A stretch of DNA of 64,000 nt from the NCBI GenBank assembly GCA_037447605.1, contig CM074806.1:1984001-2048000 (forward strand), written 5' to 3'. The position numbers and the translations under genes were made by a program. The notes beneath the pieces are model-generated. The model saw only the letters and a list, made by a program, of their open reading frames with translations, was not told where the DNA came from and searched no databases. Positions 32,458 through 52,518 of this stretch are shown one piece after another (positions within the stretch are counted from its first letter, which is position 1; the number at the start of each line of letters is the position of its first letter). Source of the DNA: Zygnema circumcarinatum SAG 698-1b. Taxonomy: Eukaryota; Plantae; Zygnematophyceae.

Positions 32458-33796
32458 TGCGCTTTCGTGCTGACAGAGGCAGACTGACTTGCCTTGCATG
32501 CACAGACGGGTATCGGATTCTCACGTAGTTACATGTAAAAAATGCAATGAAATATGGGGCTGAGTTGAAACTGCAAACTCCTGTTTTTAAGAAAATGCCT
32601 CAGAAGGTCATTTTTTGTTTAGATTGGGTATTGGCTGTGATTGCTGCTCGAGGAGTTGGTGCCTCAAGGGCTGCTTCTGAGCAGCGTTACACAGCTATAG
32701 GTAAAAAAAGCGAGACTTTTTGAACGTTCGAACAAGTTTTTTTCAGGCAATTTTTTTATGAGATGCAGAGTTCGAAGTTGGTTAGGTTGAGCTTTTGCAC
32801 GTTTCATGTAGTTGTTTCAAACTATTCAAAAAAAATATTTCACGTCCGGATTCCAACGATATGGCGGCGCACGATTCAGAAAAGTGTTCCGTTCGATCTA
32901 AGCTTAGCTTGTTCAAATGTACATGTTGTTTTGACATTATGGCGATTACGAACTAGACATTGAATAGAACAAGAAAAGGATAATTATTGGTTCAATTTCA
33001 AACTACTGTAATTGAATTCGAAGCGACAGTAGATGGTCCATGATGTCGGTCTCTTGGAGCCAATCTTCCGTGTTCCCGCATGTGCTTCTTGAAGAGGCAA
33101 AGCCATGGTACTACTACCACATGGGGGAGCGGGTTGGTGACCGTTCAAACATGCGACTGCAGTTGTGTGCAGCTCCATCTTTTCCAACAACACTTTCATG
33201 ACCAATGTTGCGCCACGCTCCGAACCAACCAGCAACACGACACAAAGTCCCGGCCTTGCCTCAATTGGCCACGCGGCAGCTTCCCATAGGCGGCGCGGGC
33301 CGACATCGCCCTCAGATAACACCGCCTCCTGCCGCTTCATATTCTGTGTGCCCCCGCCGCTACCGACAACGCTCTCCGTACCGTCACGCCGCCCCGCCGG
33401 TCCTAGTGCCGTACGGCCCACGGCGGCCGCGACCGCTCCGAATCCCGCCGAGGGCGACGCTCGTCATTCGGGCAGTGAGAAACCTTTTCTGCCGACCTCG
33501 CCAATCGTCTATCCTCGTCTCACTTGTGCAGTCGTGTCGGGCAGCACGAAAAAATGCGGCCGTACGTCCACCTCGCCTTCCCGAATCCAACCGCCCGCGC
33601 CTCCGCCGAATCCCGACCGCCGCCGCGCTGCGGGAGGAGCCGCCAAAAAGGCGCCGGCGGGCGGGAGGGCGGGCAGCCCCGGGCCCTCCTTATAAAGGGC
33701 CCGCGGCGCCCCTCGTAGCTCATCGCTCCCATCTCTCCTCTCGAGCCGCAGCAGCCCTCCCTCTCTCTCTCTCCCCCGTCCTCCGAGTTATTTCCA

Positions 33797-35707
33797 ATGG
33801 CGAGAAGCATTATGGTGTCGGGAGTGACGTACGCAGTGGCGCTAGCGGCGCTGCTGTGCGTCATCGCGCCCGCGCACGTGCGGGCGTGCCCCAACTTCTC
33901 GTGCACGGGAGCCGGGTGCTCCACGCCGATTGTGGGGGCTCTGACGCAGGACGGGCCGGGGCAGTTCGCCACGCTACTGGTGAACCAGGACCAGTCGCCC
34001 GTCACGGAGTACGCCGACTGCTGCAAGGCCTGCCAGCTGTACAACTCGACCTGCTCGTATTGGACCTTCACTCTCCTCGAAGATGGCACTGGTATGCAGC
34101 AGTGGACTTATTAACCTCAATTTTTTAATGTTTGATCTTTCATGTTTTACTTATTCGTAATAACACGTATGTGTTAGGGCCTGAAATGAGGGGAAGGGCG
34201 GCTGCAGGCGTGTGCTTCCTGTACAACCCGCAAATCTGCGCTTCCGGGAACGACTTCGTTTTAGGCGCGGGTCCCCTTCCAGGATTTGAGGGTGCTAGCT
34301 TCTTGACGGGCTCCCTCTGCGCATCTCCGGGAGTGGTTGGCGACCCCCACTACACGGGAGCTGATAATTCGCACTTTGACTTCACCGGTATGCGCAATTT
34401 CCTGAACTTCAATCAATCTTGTAATCCGCTTGGAGCTGTGTAAAAAGATAAAGAGGCTTTGAATAACCCTTTTTGCGTACTGTCAAAGCTTTGAAGAGTC
34501 CCATTTTTCATGTATGCGTGCAGGCGTTCCCGACAAGGTGTACTGCATGCTGAGTGACGCCCACCTGCACATCAACGTGTTCCATGGCGGCCGCTTCGAC
34601 CAGTGGGGCGACAACCCCCACAAGCCCCTCACGTGGATCCGCCGCGTGGCCGTCTTCTGGGGCCACCACGTCATCCAGCTCGCCGCCCGCGAAGGCGCCA
34701 CGTGGCAGTACGGCAGCGGCTACATGCAGGAGATAGTCGTGGACGGCGAGCGCGTGGCCCTGGCCCGCCCCGGCGAGGAGGCGACCTTCGCGGGCGGCGC
34801 GATCGCGGTGCGGTGGGCGGCCGCGCGGGAGCGCAGCGGCGACGACGAGACGGACGTGTACGAGGTCGCGGTGCGCGGCGCGCTGCGGATGAGGGTGCGC
34901 GCCCGCCCGGAGATCGCGCTTCTGCGCACACCCGAGGACGGCCTCGTGCACTTCGGCCTCGAGCTGAGCGAGGTCGCGGTCTCGCCGCGCGTGCACGGGG
35001 TGCTGGGCCAGACCTTCCGGAAGGATCACGAGAATCGCCTGTACGTTGGGAGCTCTCTGCAAGACTTGCTGCTTGGCCTATTGCATTTGACTCGTCAATT
35101 CGTGCATCGGTCATGTATGGTTTTTTTTTGTTTGTTTTCATCCACTTCACAGTTCTGGGCTTTAGGGTGTAGGGTTTTCTCGCTCCTTCTTTCTTTGAAC
35201 TGCCTTTATTGTTTTATTTTATTAATTATTGAGCATTTGTGTATCTATGGACTTCTATCTCACATTCCATCTTCAATTCTTAGTTCAACTCTTCTGAAGA
35301 AACTACAACTATAGAAATTCCGCCACTTTCCTCTCGAAAAGAACAGAGTTTGGACGGGTTTCTCTAAAACTCCTATAAACCCTAAAGTTCCTCAGGGCTC
35401 TTGTTCCTTCTGCCTCTGAACCCCCTCCTCCCTGCCTGCCTGCCCTTGCAGGGCCCTGCAGAAGCTGCAGTACAGCGAGGAGCTGAGGGTGAACCTCGTC
35501 CCCGGCGAGAACGCGGAGGGGTTCCTGGACGGGCGGGCGGAGGACTACGAGGCCTCCAGCCTGCTCGCAACCGACTGCCGCTTCTCGCGCTTCGCACGTG
35601 CGGAGACGGTCGACCCCGAGACGGCGCAGGCCATAGAGATGAGCCACTCCAACGCAAACGCGGGCTTGCATCGCAAGTTCGGGGGGGGGCTCACAGCGGC
35701 TGCTTGA
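33797..35707 (+). CDS. Secreted PAN/apple-like + Root_cap/vWD-like (GDPH) protein, paralog A
   Basis: Exons 33797-34091, 34208-34387, 34524-35040, 35452-35707. Signal peptide; CCKACQLYNSTCSYWTF..GVCFLY; GDPHYTGADNSHFDFTG; YCMLSDAHLHIN; VHGVLGQTF; EDYEASSLLATDCRFSRF. TATA box at about 33690. Confidence 0.85.
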
Positions 35708-36110
35708 AGAGGAAGGAAGGAAGGGGCACATTTGAGAAGGGAGCAAGCAAGCAGGCTTTTATTTTTTTTATCTCTGTGAAGAAGGTTTCATAGAATCCAG
35801 GAGGTTTGAAAACATGACATTGATGATTTTTTTTTTTTGGTATGGTAGGGGCCAGCGGAAATATGAAGAACGAGGGAAGTGGAAGCTGTAAAATTTATAT
35901 TATAAGGGGAAACCCTCCTTTCTAATACATCTCTGAATTTCTGCAAATGGAATTTTTTTGTCATTTCGCCAGTCAGATCAAACTGAAGATATATATTGTT
36001 CCACTAAAGCAAAGTGGTAAAAATTACAAATCCCAAAGATAATTTTTTTGTACTATTTTCCTGCTGTATAGTGCGCCTTTCATTTCGCATCCACGTTCGC
36101 CCTCAGCTCC

Positions 36111-36457
36111 TCACATGGCAAACGCCATTTTCCGAGGAAGCGGAGCCGTATATCCACTGACAACCGTTGTCGTTGTTGCTGCCGCCGCGGCGCTCATTTC
36201 TTTGGCCTCCGCAGTCTCTCGGTCCGGCGCGCTCGCACGTGCGAAGCGCGACACGTGGCAGTCCGTGGCGAGCATGTGCGAGGCCTCGTAGTCCTCCGCC
36301 TGCCCGTCGATGAACCCCTCCGCGTTCTCGCCGGGGACCACGTCGAGCTGAAGGAGGGCGCTGGGGACCAGCTGCTGCAGGGCCCTGTTGGAGAGAGAGA
36401 GAGGGAGAGAGAGTGAGGGAGAGAGAGAGAGGGGGGGGGGGGGGGGGNNNNNNNNNN

Positions 36458-36488
<31 letters not shown>

Positions 36489-37994
36489 GTGTCAAGAAGT
36501 TGTATAGCTTGTAAGTCAAAATTGCAGGGCAGATTCAGGAGGGTCAGGCCTGAGGTTAAGGAATTGGAGGCTGAACGTACAATCGGTTTTTGTGGTCGGG
36601 GCGGAAAGTCTGGCCGAGGACGCCATGCACATTGGGTGTTGCAGAGAGCTGTTTGAGCTCAAGGCTGAAGTGGACGACGCCATCATCCGGTGTGCGGAGA
36701 AGTTCAATCTCGGGGCGCGCTGTGACTAGGAGGCGCATGATTCCATCAATGCTTACTTCGTACAGATCCACCAAGTCATCTCCGCTTTGCATTTTGCCCG
36801 CAACCCACTTGACTTGCAGCTTGTTGCTTGCAAAGGCTGCCACATCTCCTGGCTGCGCGAGAACCACCGGCTCGCCGTCCACGACTATCTCCTGCATGTA
36901 GCCGCTGCCGTACTGCCACGCGGCGCCTTCGCGGGCGGCGAGCTGGATGACGTGGTGGCCCCAGAAGACGGCCACGCGGCGGATCCACGTGAGGGGCTTG
37001 TGGGGGTTGTCGTCCCACTGGTCGAAGCGGCCGCCATGGAACACGTTGATGTGCAGGTGGGCGTCGCTCAGCATGCAGTACTGCTTTCCGGGCAGCCCTG
37101 GAGATATCAAGCCAGTCATCACGGCGTCAGGATGAATATTATAGATTTTTTGACGAAGATAGAATTTGAGTACAAGGTACAATTCAATGACTGTTGAAGA
37201 CCGCGGTCTTACCAGTGAAGTCAAAGTGCGATCCGTCAGCACCCGTGTAATGCGGGTCTCCAACGACGCCTGCTGGTGGAGGTGGGGCGCTAATTAGAGG
37301 TTCTAAAGCCTGGGGAGGGGGGGTGCTGGGAGTGGTGGAGGTGGGAGGGGGGAGGCTGGATTCAGTGGAGGTGGGAGGAGGGGGGCTGGGAGGGGGCGGG
37401 CTGGGAGGGGGGGGGGTATCAAGAGGGGGGGGGCTGGGAGGGGGGGGACTGGGAGGAGGGGGAGGGGGACTGGAAGGGAGAGTATTGCAGATTTGACCGG
37501 AGGCGTAGTAGTAACCGGGCGAGGATGTGCAGGTGGGGCTCGGGTCATAGGGGTTGGTGACCCCGCACTTGGCCGGCTTATAAAGATAGCATGTGCCTGC
37601 ATCCTCAGCACGCGTCCGTCAGGATCGAAAACAGCAATGTGGACTACTACTTTACACACACCTATGGAGCACAGAACCCCACGTGAGCTTCCAAGTGCTC
37701 ACCGTCGCCAGCAATCTGCAGGCGCGTCCAGTAGACGCATGTGGGATAGTACGAGATGCAGAAGTCCCTGCAGTCCTGGTCAGTGGTGATCTCGCTGGTG
37801 TTCACCAAATTGTTGAACTTCCCCACCAAGTTCGTGAAGGACGTGGTGGAGATCATGCGCCCCGGCACGCCCACTGTGCTGTTGCACACGAAGTTAGGGC
37901 AAGAGACAGAGCCGGCGCCCGTGCACTGCCCAGAGGCCATCCTCACTGAAAGCAGAGCCACGAGCACAATTGCGGAGAGACGGAGCGCCGCCAT
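36111..37994 (-). CDS. Secreted PAN/apple-like + Ser-Pro extensin stalk + Root_cap/vWD-like (GDPH) protein, paralog B
   Basis: MAALRLSAIVLVALLSVRMASG signal; CRDFCISYYPTCVYWT..GTCYLY; SPPPP/SPPP-rich linker about 37280-37475; GDPHYTGADGSHFDFTG; VHGVLGQTF; EDYEASHMLATDCHVSRF. Intron positions match paralog A. Confidence 0.85.
36431..36487. repeat. Poly-G tract containing an assembly gap (Ns 36448-36457) in the last intron of paralog B
   Basis: Directly visible; true length unknown. Confidence 0.9.
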
Positions 37995-39870
37995 CTTCTC
38001 GAGTCTCAGCAAGCTCGCAGCGGCTTCCCTGAGCTCAGGAGGCAGTGGCCAGAAGAGCGAGAGGCAGGAAGGAGAGGCGAGAGGCGAGCAGGCAGGGCTG
38101 GATACTTGGACATTGAGGGCCTCCCCCCCTTCTTATGGCGGGGCCGAGCGGGCGAGGGAGGGCGGTCGCCGGGCGCGGAGGGGAGGAATGGGGGAGCCCG
38201 CCCGCCGCCCGCCGCCGCGCTGCGGCTCGGACGGACGGACGTACGGACGGAGGGAGGGCGACGCGAACGGGCGCCGGCGGCGGCCGCAAAACGACAAAAA
38301 GGTGGCGTCGCGCGGCTATGGGTAAATAACCGGCGGTCACTTGTGGGACTCTAGTGGGCGCGCTGCCACGTGGCAGCGAGCGCCGCTAGCCGACAATGGC
38401 ATTTAATCATGACATTTTGGCGGAGCCACGTGGCGGTGGATGAGTCGACGAGGCCGCGCAGCAGTCTCTTTCGACCAATCACAGCGCGAGGATCGCCAGA
38501 TATTTCGCATAGAATGGAGGAAAGAGTTAACGCTTAACTATTTTCTATGCATGGGATTATTGCGATTTGGTTGAACTAGACTTGAAACTGGGGACCGAGC
38601 ATGGAGCCGGGTTTGAGAGGCGCGCGACGGTCCAGAGGGAGGCTGAGGTTGTACCGGAGTGCCGCACGAGCGAGGGCGGTTTCCTTCCGCGGTCATGGAG
38701 GGCCGCCGGCGGTTGGCCCGAGGGCGGGGGCGGGGCGGGGCCGCGCACAAGGTACGGAGGGGGCCGGGGGGGGCGAGTTGTGGGTACATTATGAGGTAAG
38801 GGGGGGGGGGGGTCACATGGAACACGGCCCAGTTTCAACGCTCTACTGAGCAGGGGTGGTTGCTAACTAAGTCATTCCAAACCAGACGTGGTTGTAAACT
38901 AAAGGTTTCTAAGCATGCATTGTTGTTGGTTTGGAGCATTTCTAGGAAAGGGTATGGCCTAACTACAAAAGGTCCTGGCCAGGGGTGGTTACTTACCACA
39001 ACTTAACTAAAAAAACGCAAATAGAGATGAATGTGCCAACACATGGCAAGCGACGAAGACGAGTCGTTACGAGTACGAGGGTGTTATGGAACAAGGCTCG
39101 CTTTTACTAGCGTTGTAGGTAGGCACTTTGTAAGTAGCAGTCTATAGCTAGAAATTTATACCGTATTGTGCCCTTATAACGATTTGTTAGGGGGGTGGCG
39201 AATGGATTTCCCATCAATCATTAGTCCGTGGATGGGATAATCATTGGTCAGTTGTCCTTGGCTTGTTATCTCCTAGTAAGTTTGTTAGGATTAGGAACAT
39301 CCCTCACATACTTTGACGTCGCGAATTGCCCACCCCTACTCTCGTGAGTGGCACGTTGTAAGTGACGATGTAGGTTCCCCCGAGAAAAGGTGCAAGCATG
39401 AGAAGACTCGTGACGTAAGCACTACGCTATATTCCTTGTAGAGACGGCAAGTTGGCCAAAATTAGCATTTCTGATGTTGAAGGAAAATTGTCGCATTTGC
39501 ACTTAAAACGAGTACATGCTGCTCACAGAACAGTGAGCAGAACTTTTCAGATCGTACTCGTCCAATTCTCAGACGAGCAATTTGCTGAAACGTGGGTACG
39601 CGGGCATGTGACCGCACTGGCGACAAGCTCACTGTCCTATCCGACGAAACAATTCCCCTCGTGCTGTTCAAGAGTTGCAGTGCATTTCAGTACACTTAAA
39701 CAGTAAGGACAAAAACCTACACAGAACTATTTTGATATGTTGTTGTGGAAGTGAAAAGAGACGGCGGAAACCAAACAACTGCATGGCAGCTTAGTGGTGG
39801 AGCTTTTTACATCATCTAAAATGCAAAACGTGGAAGCTTGCAGGTGTGGAAAGTGCCACTTGACGCATGG

Positions 39871-40062
39871 CAGTGGCGGATCCGCGGTTGCGTTAGGGGA
39901 GACTTACCCCCCCCCTCAAATTTTGAAAAACTGGTAGCCACTAATTGCCTTTGTAAGTTGAATAGCAAAAATACAATCGAATTTCAGATTTTTTTCCCAA
40001 CTCATCCCCTTAAACTTGGATCTCAACCCCCCCTTGGACAAAAGTCCTGGACCCGTCATGTG
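39871..40062. mobile_element. Possible degenerate hAT-type MITE
   Basis: Starts CAGTGGCGGATCC; an imperfect inverted copy GGACCCGTCATGTG lies at 40049-40062; no clear TSD. Confidence 0.3.
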
Positions 40063-40221
40063 GCACGTATCAGAGTATTATAAATAGCCAACATTTCTTC
40101 ACTTGTACATTGCAACTATCACATACAATCGCCCTTTTTTTACAATCGCTCAACAAAATTCTTCAACTGTGATCGATAAGATTGTCCACCCTGGTGTACG
40201 CTACTATCTTTGGGCAAGCAA

Positions 40222-41945
40222 CTATTTGGAACTTGCTACCGAAGTCACCATCTTCCGCGGCAGCTGCTGCGCGTACACGCTCTCTCCCCCCGCGTGCGTA
40301 CTCATTTCAATGGCCTGCGCCGTCTCGAGGTCCTGCTCATCAGCGCGGGCGAAGCGCGACATTTTGCAGTCGGCTGCGAAGAGGTGTGACACCTCGTAGT
40401 CCTCCGTGCGGCCGTCGAGGAATCCCTCCGCGTTATCACCGGGCACCATATTCACATTCAGCGACGTACTCCAAACCAGCTTTTGCTGTGATCTGTAAGA
40501 GAAAAGAGACGCATGTAAGGTTATTCACTACCAGAGTTACGCGTGCGCATATCTTATGCGAAAAGAATGAACAAAACGGCTGCTTGGGGAAATGTACGCC
40601 TTACAGTCGATCTTGCCGGCCGCGACGAAACGTTTGGCCGAGCACTCCGTGCACGTTGGGTGTGACCGCGACCTCGGGCAGCTCCAAGCTCAAGTGCACC
40701 ACTGCGTCCTCGGGCGTTCGCAGAAGCTTCACCTCCGGCCGCACCGTTACAAGGAGACGCAGCACGCCCGCAATGGCGATTTCGTACCTGTCCTGGAAGT
40801 CGAGCCCACTTCGCAGACGGCCAGCGATCCACTTGATCTTCAGTTTGCCGTCAAGCATAACTGCAGTATCACCGGGCTGGGCGAGGTGCAAAGGCACCCC
40901 GTCAATGCTTATGTTTTGCATGTAGCCCCCCGCGTACCGCAGGTCAGAGCCTGCTCTTGCTGCCAAATGGACGACGTGGTGGCCCCATAAGATTGCCAGT
41001 TGCCGAATCCATGTGAGGGGCTTGTGAGGGTTGTCCCCCCACCGGTCGAAGCGACCGCCATGAAGCACGTTGATGTGCACATGCGCATCACTCAGCATGC
41101 AATATTTTCGTCCAGGGAGCCCTGTATGTATGCATTGAAACAACACCGTAAAGACATAATAAACCAATTTGCCAACACGATGGAAGTCACAATCGAATTA
41201 CTTCCTGTTTGCGATTTTTTTGAAGTGCCAAGTAAGCTTTTTCCTCAAATTCTGATTCAGGTGCTTCAACGCACGAACTCCTCAACTCCGGCGCAGGCAG
41301 AGCCGTCCCCGCGAGCGCGCACACACCTGTGAAGTCAAAGCGCGAGCCGTCCGCGCCCGTGTAGTGCGGGTCGCCCTCCGCCCCGGGGTCGCCGGGCGAC
41401 GGCGCGGAGGGCGCCGCGCTGCACGCCGCCCCCGACACCGACCGTGCGCTCGTCGGGTTGCCGGAGAACCCTTTTGGATCGCACGTGGCGTTCGGAAGGT
41501 AGCCGGACTCGGACGGGCACTGCGCGGCCCGGAACAATATGCACACGCCTGCAGACGTCCTGCCTGTCAGCGGAAATTTTTTAAATTCATTGCAGCATGT
41601 GCGAGAGAATAAACAGAGTGTTCGATATATGCAGGAGAGAAAAGGATAAGTTAGCTTGTTCTTACTCTCGCCATCCTTAATGAAGGTCCAATAGCCGCAG
41701 GTCGGATAGGCCCCTTCGCAGAGCTGGGAGCAATATTCCTGTCCAGAGACAAGATCATTATATTCGTACAAGACGGAGCGGCTGAAGGCTTGCCCCTGCT
41801 GCTCGCTGAACTGTCCCGGTACGCCCACGCGCGAGTTGCATTCCAGGCTCGGGCAGGGCCCTGCGCTCGTGCTGCCGCACTGCGCCCGCGCAGAATACAC
41901 CGCAGAGAGAAGCAGAATCGCAGATAGGATCCTTCCGGTCGCCAT
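40222..41945 (-). CDS. Secreted PAN/apple-like + Root_cap/vWD-like (GDPH) protein, paralog C
   Basis: MATGRILSAILLLSAVYSARA signal; CSQLCEGAYPTCGYWTF..GVCILF; GDPHYTGADGSRFDFTG; YCMLSDAHVHIN; VHGVLGQTF; EDYEVSHLFAADCKMSRF. Same intron layout. Confidence 0.85.
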
Positions 41946-51570: not shown

Positions 51571-52518
51571 TCAATCACTCGGGTTGGACTCGATTTCATT
51601 TGGCTTCCCCTTCCCATCTCTATACTTGCTGCTGCCTCTGCTCTTCTCCTTCTCTCTCTTCTTCTGATGATTTCGCTTTCGCTCTCTGTGTTCACTGTTA
51701 TCCGAATCACTAATTTCTTTTCTGCTTTGTCTCCTCTCCCTTTCTCTACTCTTCTTCTTTGACAGCCGCCTGTCACCCTCTGACTCGTCGGAGTAATCTG
51801 AAGAATCATCCTCACTTTCTGACTTCCTTTTCTTGCTGTGCTTTTTTGAACGCCTCTTATCCGTAGAAGCCTTCTTGCTGCCTCGTTTCTTTCGCTTTCT
51901 CCTCTTCTGGTCTTCGGAGCTTTCCTCGGCATCAGAATCACTGCTGCTCTCGTCGTCAACCCTCCTACGCTTGCGTGACTTTCTCTTATCTTTCTCCTTC
52001 TCCCGTAATTTGCTTTTAGATCCTCCAGCAGAGCTTCTAGAGGTCAAGCCTTGAGCTTTTGCAAGGGCACGCTCCATTTCACTGTCCAAGTCACTTTCAG
52101 AAATATCACTTTCCTCACTATCTTCCTCTCCTTGACCCCCTTCCCCTTCCATCCGCAAGACCAAGTCTCCATTACCTTCAATTGCACCTACTATCTCCTC
52201 CTTAGCCGTCAAGAAATTCCTGCATTGAAAAGTGAGATGCCCTACTCTGTTGCATTTTTTGCAGGATCCCCGCGTTTCATTTGCATTGGAACCAGTCAAA
52301 CGCGCAAGTGCAAGCAACCCCTGAAAGCTGTCATAAGCATTGTCAGCTGCCGCCTTATCGACCGGCCCTGTTTCATCCTTCACGACCTCCTTTTTCTGCT
52401 CCGGCGCGTACGGATCGTACCCAATTGCACTCTGCCAAATCCCGTGCGTTTGCAACGCGGCACTACTATGCACCCGGTTGTTCGCCGGCATGCGCACGCG
52501 CCCCGCTGTTGCAGGCAT
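51571..52518 (-). CDS. CXIP4: CAX-interacting protein 4 (CCHC zinc knuckle, RS/K-rich tail)
   Basis: Intronless 315-aa ORF: MPATAGRVRMPANNRVHSSAALQTHGIWQSAIGYDPYAP..SFQGLLALARLTG..CKKCNRVGHLTFQCRNFL. Confidence 0.95.
   Translation of the reverse strand: MPATAGRVRMPANNRVHSSAALQTHGIWQSAIGYDPYAPEQKKEVVKDETGPVDKAAADNAYDSFQGLLALARLTGSNANETRGSCKKCNRVGHLTFQCRNFLTAKEEIVGAIEGNGDLVLRMEGEGGQGEEDSEESDISESDLDSEMERALAKAQGLTSRSSAGGSKSKLREKEKDKRKSRKRRRVDDESSSDSDAEESSEDQKRRKRKKRGSKKASTDKRRSKKHSKKRKSESEDDSSDYSDESEGDRRLSKKKSRERERRQSRKEISDSDNSEHRERKRNHQKKREKEKSRGSSKYRDGKGKPNEIESNPSD

Follow-up and report, generated by a model that had tools for sequence, protein, structure and literature searches.

The closest described relatives of the locus considered here are the root cap proteins (RCPs), a family of about 2000 secreted streptophyte proteins with the Pfam domain Root_cap (PF06830), about 60 of them in Closterium. 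Their function has been unknown since 1999, and their N-terminal parts show little homology to known proteins (Raymond, 2024, bioRxiv 10.1101/2024.01.29.577848). The conserved C-terminal part, some 280 residues made up of a beta-sandwich and the root cap region, was named the DPH domain by Prochazkova et al. (2024; PMC10796529), and a DUF3494 ice-binding module is among the cargoes it carries (PMC10796529). Lectin-like or oligomerising roles have been proposed by the authors of these family papers. Here we describe three genes, g1, g2 and g3, in a window of 64,000 nucleotides (nt) of Zygnema circumcarinatum SAG 698-1b (contig CM074806.1, positions 1,984,001 to 2,048,000; "window" denotes this whole stretch of DNA). 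They are members of the described family. Like maize RCP1, the Ancylonema ice-binding protein AnIBP and the Closterium RCPs, their products combine a secretion signal and a variable N-terminal part with a C-terminal domain of about 280 residues that starts at D-P-H, has a predicted beta-sandwich and ends with the Root_cap motifs (VHGVLGQT..., DC..SRF), and they share the streptophyte distribution of the family. Unlike the published proteins, they carry a PAN/apple-like N-terminal part, to which g2 adds an extensin-type stalk.

A second group of relevant systems is found in animals. In the VWD domain D10 of FCGBP an Asp-Pro bond within G-D-P-H is cleaved, and exchange of the Asp for Ala or Asn, or of the His for Asn, abolishes cleavage (Yeshaya et al., 2024; PMC10880436). 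The same authors noted that ITIH3, ITIH5 and ITIH6 carry GDPH in an unannotated VWD-like sandwich (PMC10880436). The product of Asp-Pro cleavage is a reactive Asp-anhydride (Ehrencrona et al., 2021; PMC8267560), and ITIH3 becomes ester-linked to chondroitin sulfate in a reaction that requires the propeptide and is triggered by low pH (PMC8267560). The best overall explanation of g1-g3 appears to be a secreted PAN head joined to a DPH tail of this self-cleaving type, a reading to which we give about an even chance.

After hand splicing of the window, each of the three genes yields a complete open reading frame (ORF) of four exons with canonical GT..AG introns (Table 1). The intron phases are 1, 1 and 2 in all three, exon 3 measures 517 nt in each, and the introns fall at the same columns of the protein alignment. 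Identical intron positions had been stated in a preliminary description of this DNA. All motifs that it listed for the C-terminal domain (GDPHYTGAD[NG]S[HR]FDFTG, YCMLSDAH.HIN, VHGVLGQTF and DY..S.[LM].A.DC..SRF) were recovered from all three proteins. Its cysteine module, C-x3-C-x6-C-x-YWT...G-x-C-x-L-[YF]-x4-C...C, also recurs in g1-g3, but the fixed spacer between YWT and G-x-C does not hold, as it comprises 10-11 residues in g2 and g3 and 22 in g1. The contrast it drew between divergent heads and a conserved tail was borne out by identities among the paralogs of 24-38% in the N-terminal parts and 60-70% from GDPH onward. Counted from GDPH to the C-terminus, the tail is 273 amino acids (aa) long in g1, 279 in g2 and 278 in g3. 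The three are real, intact genes; the best explanation is that they are paralogs, expressed or able to be expressed, whose products are secreted modular proteins of the cell surface or matrix of a zygnematophyte-like alga. No further copy was found in the window by tblastn.

The C-terminal ~275 residues of g1-g3 belong to the Root_cap/DPH family, in agreement with the initial assignment. Because intron 3 splits the Pfam model (57 positions, cut-off 27 bits), the exons were scored separately, and both halves were found in every paralog (21.8 + 16.8 bits in g1, 23.9 + 16.6 in g2, 18.0 + 18.1 in g3). The uninterrupted domain of the closest relative, P0001, reaches 30 bits, and Root_cap was matched in 68 of 70 relatives. 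Among 1.8 billion proteins, exon 3 of g1 matched 185 representatives at E<=1e-3, including 111 at <=1e-10; two multi-stretch matches, P0131 and P0132, were set aside as spurious, being subtilase and HYR/Kelch repeat proteins. P0001 (439 aa) has the same architecture as g1-g3 and is 59-61% identical to them in the C-terminal domain and 35-38% in the N module. Those relatives that carry a species name come from Closterium spp. and Mesotaenium endlicherianum and are annotated as unnamed or hypothetical proteins. The protein collections searched do not contain g1-g3 themselves. The combination of PAN and DPH is common among zygnematophyte proteins, and the locus is not unique in this respect. Two relatives, P0009 and P0151, lie near each other on the M. 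endlicherianum scaffold ME000109S (genes 10900 and 10880); clustering within this family may be conserved or recurrent.

A family alignment of 70 sequences, with a mean column identity of only 13%, places the motif among the most conserved features. Of the 70 members, 66 retain the Asp, 69 the Pro and 60 the His (6 have Arg instead), and the opening D-P-[HR]-[FYLM]-x-G-x-x-G-x-x-[FY]-x-F is nearly universal. Conservation starts exactly at D-P-H, and the columns upstream are gappy, although a hydrophobic residue two positions before the motif Gly is common. What precedes the tail varies widely. Pollen_Ole_e_1 and a pectin acetylesterase (PAE) domain with PAN occur as cargoes, and the combination of Ole e 1 with Root_cap was confirmed in the homologs P0008, P0028 and P0152. 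A cargo-less subgroup (P0058, P0060, P0067, P0086, P0105) has H-G-D-P-H-F directly after the signal peptide and, in place of an N-terminal head, a C-terminal extension of 150-290 aa. Angiosperm-type members (P0117, P0133, P0136, P0118, P0139, P0146) read D-P-R, with a Cys at the second position ahead of the Asp; downstream of the motif, four of these six contain five cysteines and the other two contain three and two. This upstream Cys and the extra downstream ones leave room for a VWD-like disulfide between fragments, which is lacking in the algal D-P-H members.

The fold of the tail was assessed with an AlphaFold model of P0001, built with the 70-sequence alignment and used as a proxy for g1-g3. 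Its mean predicted local distance difference test score (pLDDT) is 81, with values above 90 throughout the C-terminal domain. In a Foldseek search of the PDB the top matches were VWD chains only (VWF, MUC2, MUC5AC, MUC5B, FCGBP, Cypridina luciferase and RGMB), with probability 1.0 and E-values from 3e-6 upward; VWF, MUC2, MUC5AC, FCGBP and RGMB lie between 3e-6 and 1e-3. VIA-align gave Z scores of 15.2 for MUC5AC, 14.8 for MUC2, 14.6 for VWF, 13.3 for FCGBP D10 and 10-11 for RGMB, at root-mean-square deviations of 2.2-2.8 A (2.2-2.6 A over about 150 residues for the matches at Z 13-15), compared with Z <=3.9 for unrelated folds. Pro169 of the P0001 motif aligns with residue 4081 of FCGBP D10 chain B and residue 169 of RGMB, with which these chains start once the Asp-Pro bond has been cut. 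Among Swiss-Prot models in the AlphaFold database (AFDB), the top matches were the C-terminal regions of ITIH5, ITIH1, ITIH2 and ITIH3 (E 4e-8 to 2e-5), with 277-312 aligned residues over model positions 160-407, that is, the sandwich together with the Root_cap part; KCP, BMPER, SUSD2, MUC6 and MUC4 followed. In the AFDB clusters, plant root cap proteins came first (E 1e-17) and protist "VWFD domain-containing" proteins next. A language-model feature search likewise returned Root_cap, VWD, ITI_HC_C, RGM_C and PAN clusters, which serve as leads only.

Sequence profiles point in the same direction at lower scores. Pfam VWD (PF00094) was matched in 15 of the 70 members at E<1, always from profile position 2-4 on GDPH, and one distant member, P0067 (E 7e-16 to g1 exon 3), passed the gathering threshold (27.7 bits vs 22.9). 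ITI_HC_C (PF06668) appeared in 4 of the 70, in each case below threshold (best E 2.6e-4, P0049, 21.3 vs 27 bits). At the level of the predicted structure, the comparisons show the DPH domain to be a VWD-superfold beta-sandwich with an extra C-terminal subdomain, overall most similar to the propeptide domain at the C-terminus of ITIH heavy chains, and they place the nearly invariant G-D-P-H between the first two strands, where FCGBP and RGMB are cut at Asp-Pro. The vWD-like fold and the ITIH likeness that had been proposed from the letters of the window are thus both recovered in the model of the homolog.

The two animal groups differ in how they compare with the algal tail. VWD domains such as those of FCGBP, MUC2, MUC5AC, RGM, BMPER and SUSD2 share the beta-sandwich and the opening G-D-P-H-Y-T-x-x-D-G-x-x-F-D-F-x-G, with the Pro aligned to the post-cleavage residue. 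Unlike them, the DPH domain continues into the Root_cap subdomain and is always single and usually C-terminal; Pfam C8, TIL and E modules were absent from all family members scanned, and no disulfide between the prospective fragments is evident. ITIH heavy chains also have a C-terminal domain that begins at D-P-H, and the predicted folds align over 250-310 residues, extending beyond the sandwich. However, proteins of the g1-g3 type have neither VIT nor vWA upstream, the sequence similarity is sub-threshold, and the acceptor glycan, if there is any, would be a plant-type wall or mucilage polymer.

The N-terminal module of g1-g3 is PAN/apple-like with moderately good support, most of which comes from the family as a whole. 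Pfam PAN_4 scored 19.3 bits on exon 1 of g1, below the cut-off of 27, and exon 1 of g2 and g3 gave no Pfam PAN match. Among the 70 members, PAN_4 was found in 23 (best 2.8e-9) and PAN_1 in 14, and P0029 exceeds the PAN_1 cut-off (25.2 vs 21.4 bits). When the family profile was compared with the PDB, 24 of the 26 weak matches were apple/PAN domains (MIC5, MIC4, factor XI, HGF and kallikrein among them), all on the columns of the N module. Residues 61-160 of the P0001 model resemble the HGF N domain (Z 7.5) and the PAN domain of a fungal oxidase (Z 7.8), with values of 7.3-7.8 over the two, and the module cysteines align across g1-g3 and P0001. The core pattern C-x3-C-x6-C-x-[YF]-W ... C-x-L-[YF] is shared with the HGF N domain, the apple domains of factor XI and prekallikrein and apicomplexan MIC4/MIC5, but the algal module is an extended form that has ten cysteines and, at its N-terminus, a C-P-x-F-x-C hairpin. 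An arrangement of Apple and VWD-like domains may also exist outside the streptophytes, since the AFDB cluster R1DNH1 (an "Apple domain-containing protein" of the haptophyte Emiliania huxleyi) aligned to the P0001 model over positions 1-402. In g2, head and tail are separated by a linker of 54% Pro and 28% Ser plus Thr with five S-P(3-6) units, encoded by DNA with direct repeats at 15-nt spacing (37315-37477). By its repeated Ser-Pro units this linker is a predicted extensin-type stalk; chimeric extensin and Root_cap proteins have been listed in poplar (PMC5073881).

By analogy with the animal systems, the following mechanism can be proposed. In the acidic late secretory pathway or the apoplast, the Asp side chain would attack its own peptide bond and the chain would break between Asp and Pro, leaving the PAN module with a C-terminal Asp (anhydride). 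In g2 the break would leave an end reading ...GVVGD and a new start reading PHYTGADGSHFDFTG. The Asp and His needed for cleavage of FCGBP are both present in g1-g3. No disulfide would be expected to span the break, because the mature proteins have 10 cysteines before the motif and 2 after it, a count that leaves none to bridge the Asp-Pro bond, and because in g2 only four residues separate the poly-proline from the Gly. Once cut off, the PAN module, which would supply a ligand specificity differing between the paralogs, could either be set free or become ester-linked, like ITIH, to a glycan hydroxyl in the wall or mucilage. We regard autocatalytic cleavage of the Asp-Pro bond in an acidic compartment as an even bet, and it is less likely that the freed module would be released or glycan-esterified rather than held in place. 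The acid-triggered cleavage with release or covalent tethering, and the part in adhesion or mate recognition, that the preliminary description had proposed are plausible as candidate functions.

Several points weigh against a self-cleaving tail. Cleavage of any family member is a proposal by analogy. The structural model is that of a homolog, not of the window's own proteins, and in the ITIH match both structures are predicted. With Pfam VWD, close homologs reach 13.5-19.7 bits, under the cut-off of 22.9. The family profile found no VWD chains among PDB sequences, so that the VWD link rests on the fold comparison and on Pfam matches in the other direction; phmmer of g1 exon 3 against PDB sequences likewise gave nothing relevant. 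The disulfide argument is drawn from cysteine counts, and the co-occurrence of Cys190 and Cys397 in the family (both present in 47 members, neither in 6, discordant in 17) is only suggestive. Furthermore, GDPH in a VWD fold is not sufficient for cleavage, as recombinant MUC2 can stay uncleaved (PMC10880436).

Some of this evidence also favours an alternative in which g1-g3 are intact two-module wall or mucilage proteins that keep G-D-P-H for folding and act as lectin-like or oligomerising matrix proteins on a single chain. This is a possibility that we hold only tentatively. Besides MUC2, it would agree with the roles proposed by the authors of the family papers and with a spot of about 55 kDa, the full-length mass of the Ancylonema ice-binding DPH protein, that was obtained by ice-affinity purification (PMC10796529). 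Identification of that spot by mass spectrometry failed, however, and it argues only weakly for an uncleaved chain. The alternative also draws on the angiosperm members with D-P-R and on some algal members whose DPH domain directly follows the signal peptide without any cargo. In these proteins the domain has a function of its own, and it must do more than act as a leaving group. On the other hand, many VWD domains fold without the motif, whereas in the DPH family the columns of Asp, Pro and His rank with the best conserved of a highly divergent alignment whose conservation begins just there, and both residues required for cleavage of FCGBP have been retained.

If the tail does cleave itself, the fate of the fragments may be viewed in two further ways. 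The DPH/Root_cap domain could be the plant-lineage counterpart of the ITIH propeptide and ester-link whatever cargo precedes it to a wall or mucilage polysaccharide through the Asp-anhydride of G-D|P-H. We consider this unlikely as a specific claim; if true, it would reveal a general protein-to-glycan ligation system of streptophytes, in which the fast-diverging PAN heads are wall-anchored recognition modules. Slightly more doubtful still is that the chain is cleaved but the fragments stay together as in RGM and FCGBP, so that cleavage relaxes and stabilises the sandwich and nothing is released or tethered. Cleavage of FCGBP D10 indeed raises protease resistance and thermal cooperativity (PMC10880436), short strands (E152-158 and E163-166) immediately precede the motif in the P0001 model, and the hydrophobic residue upstream of the Gly is common in the family. 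However, FCGBP and SUSD2 use a disulfide between the fragments, for which the 10 + 2 cysteines of g1-g3 offer no partner. Moreover, the g2 motif is preceded by PPPP-AGVV after the proline stalk, and at most four residues could join the sheet.

That the genes are annotation or assembly artefacts, either pseudogenes or exons misjoined across the gap of unknown length inside g2, is hardly credible given three intact ORFs with canonical splice sites, the 60-70% identity of their conserved domain and, for g2, spliced contigs of three RNA runs that reproduce the gene end to end and largely refute this idea. The gap (Ns at 36448-36457) lies in a poly-G/C homopolymer run inside intron 3. RNA contigs from four runs were aligned to 33700-38100, and in three runs contig joints at 36383|36580, 37096|37212 and 37595|37702 coincide with the predicted exon borders. 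The spanning contigs are record 8 of run X2, record 16 of X3 (1593 nt, depth 203) and record 19 of X6 (1885 nt, depth 72), with depths of 40-203 over the three introns. They splice across the gap-bearing intron, which shows that one mRNA carries the sequence on either side of the gap and that the reading frame of g2 is independent of the unread letters. Five RNA runs carry 81-83% of the sampled words of 36581-37994, approximately the exonic fraction of that stretch. Expression of g2 is good; its mRNA reaches upstream to 38100 or farther and is polyadenylated near 35876. RNA depth on g1 is low (2-4), with contig pieces on exon 1 and the 3' end. Its intron 3 (35041-35451) was confirmed by a low-depth GT..AG contig joint, and the basis for g1 introns 1 and 2 and for the whole g3 model is homology only. 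Deep contigs (depth up to 1240) at 33755-33777 and 34690-34708 were rejected as g1 expression; they match only about 20 nt of CT-rich or short words, then diverge from the window, and derive from unrelated abundant transcripts.

Table 1. Coordinates, in window numbering, of the three genes and of features within them.
Feature	Position (strand)	Exons or residues	Layout or remark	Basis
g1 coding sequence, 425 aa	33797..35707 (+)	exons 33797-34091, 34178-34387, 34524-35040, 35452-35707	signal peptide, PAN-like module (10 Cys), short linker, DPH/Root_cap domain starting at aa 153	spliced ORF
g2 coding sequence, 488 aa	36111..37994 (-)	exons 37994-37703, 37596-37213, 37097-36581, 36384-36111	plan of g1 plus proline-rich linker	spliced ORF and contigs
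g3 coding sequence, 429 aa	40222..41945 (-)	exons 41945-41666, 41548-41327, 41121-40605, 40492-40222	as g1; introns match g1 and g2 in position and phase	spliced ORF, homology
g1 G-D-P-H codons	34339..34350 (+)	aa 153-156	candidate scissile bond Asp154-Pro155	
g2 G-D-P-H codons	37250..37261 (-)	aa 210-213		
g3 G-D-P-H codons	41364..41375 (-)	aa 152-155		
g2 extensin-like linker	37274..37486 (-)	aa 135-205 (71 residues)		sequence counts
g2 intron 3	36385..36580 (-)		contains assembly gap	
Near-identical exon 3 tract of g1 and g2	34540..34751 (+) with 37081-36870 (-)		3 mismatches in 212 nt	

The neighbourhood of the cluster has further features. g1 and g2 are convergent and their 3' ends nearly meet, as g1 contig pieces extend to 35850; the poly(A) site of g2 was seen as a poly-T loose end in run X2. 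Exon 3 of these two inverted paralogs contains a nearly identical tract (Table 1), whereas the rest of the exon is about 58% identical and g3 has no such tract. Judged from the sequence, a recent gene conversion between g1 and g2 is probably the origin of this tract. An identical GC-rich word of 16 nt, CGCCGCCGCGCTGCGG, occurs at 33618-33633 and 38210-38225, about 180-215 nt upstream of the g1 and g2 start codons. It lies on the same DNA strand at both sites and hence is inverted relative to g2; it did not arise by chance in any of 100 shuffles, and it is absent upstream of g3. Elsewhere in the window, a second assembly gap of 10 Ns was found at 2428-2437. An ORF of 315 aa (51571-52518, minus strand) with a sub-threshold zf-CCHC_3 zinc knuckle (25.8 bits) may be the remnant of a retroelement gag gene; apart from this weak zinc knuckle, the other long ORFs of the window gave no Pfam match.

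The preliminary description had regarded the architecture as undescribed in plants. This holds only in part, because DPH/Root_cap proteins with secretion signals and variable N-termini, including those of Closterium, have been reported. The PAN module and the relationship to VWD and ITIH are absent from the two papers concerned, neither of which mentions VWD, ITIH or Asp-Pro cleavage (PMC10796529; bioRxiv 10.1101/2024.01.29.577848). In the searchable literature, no paper was found that links root cap or LEA proteins to GDPH, von Willebrand or VWD, and the Ancylonema study was the only one found on root cap proteins of zygnematophytes. As far as this literature shows, the new elements are the view of the tail as a candidate autoprocessing domain of the VWD/ITIH type and of the head as PAN-like.

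If the DPH domain is an autoprocessing module of this type, the Root_cap family would gain a concrete chemistry open to testing by gel electrophoresis. Such a module would also provide a rationale for the many unrelated N-terminal heads found on the Root_cap tail. Self-cleavage of the VWD type would then be known for the first time from outside the animals, perhaps together with a first case of protein-glycan esterification there, and the finding would bear on the decoration of wall and mucilage in the algal ancestors of land plants.

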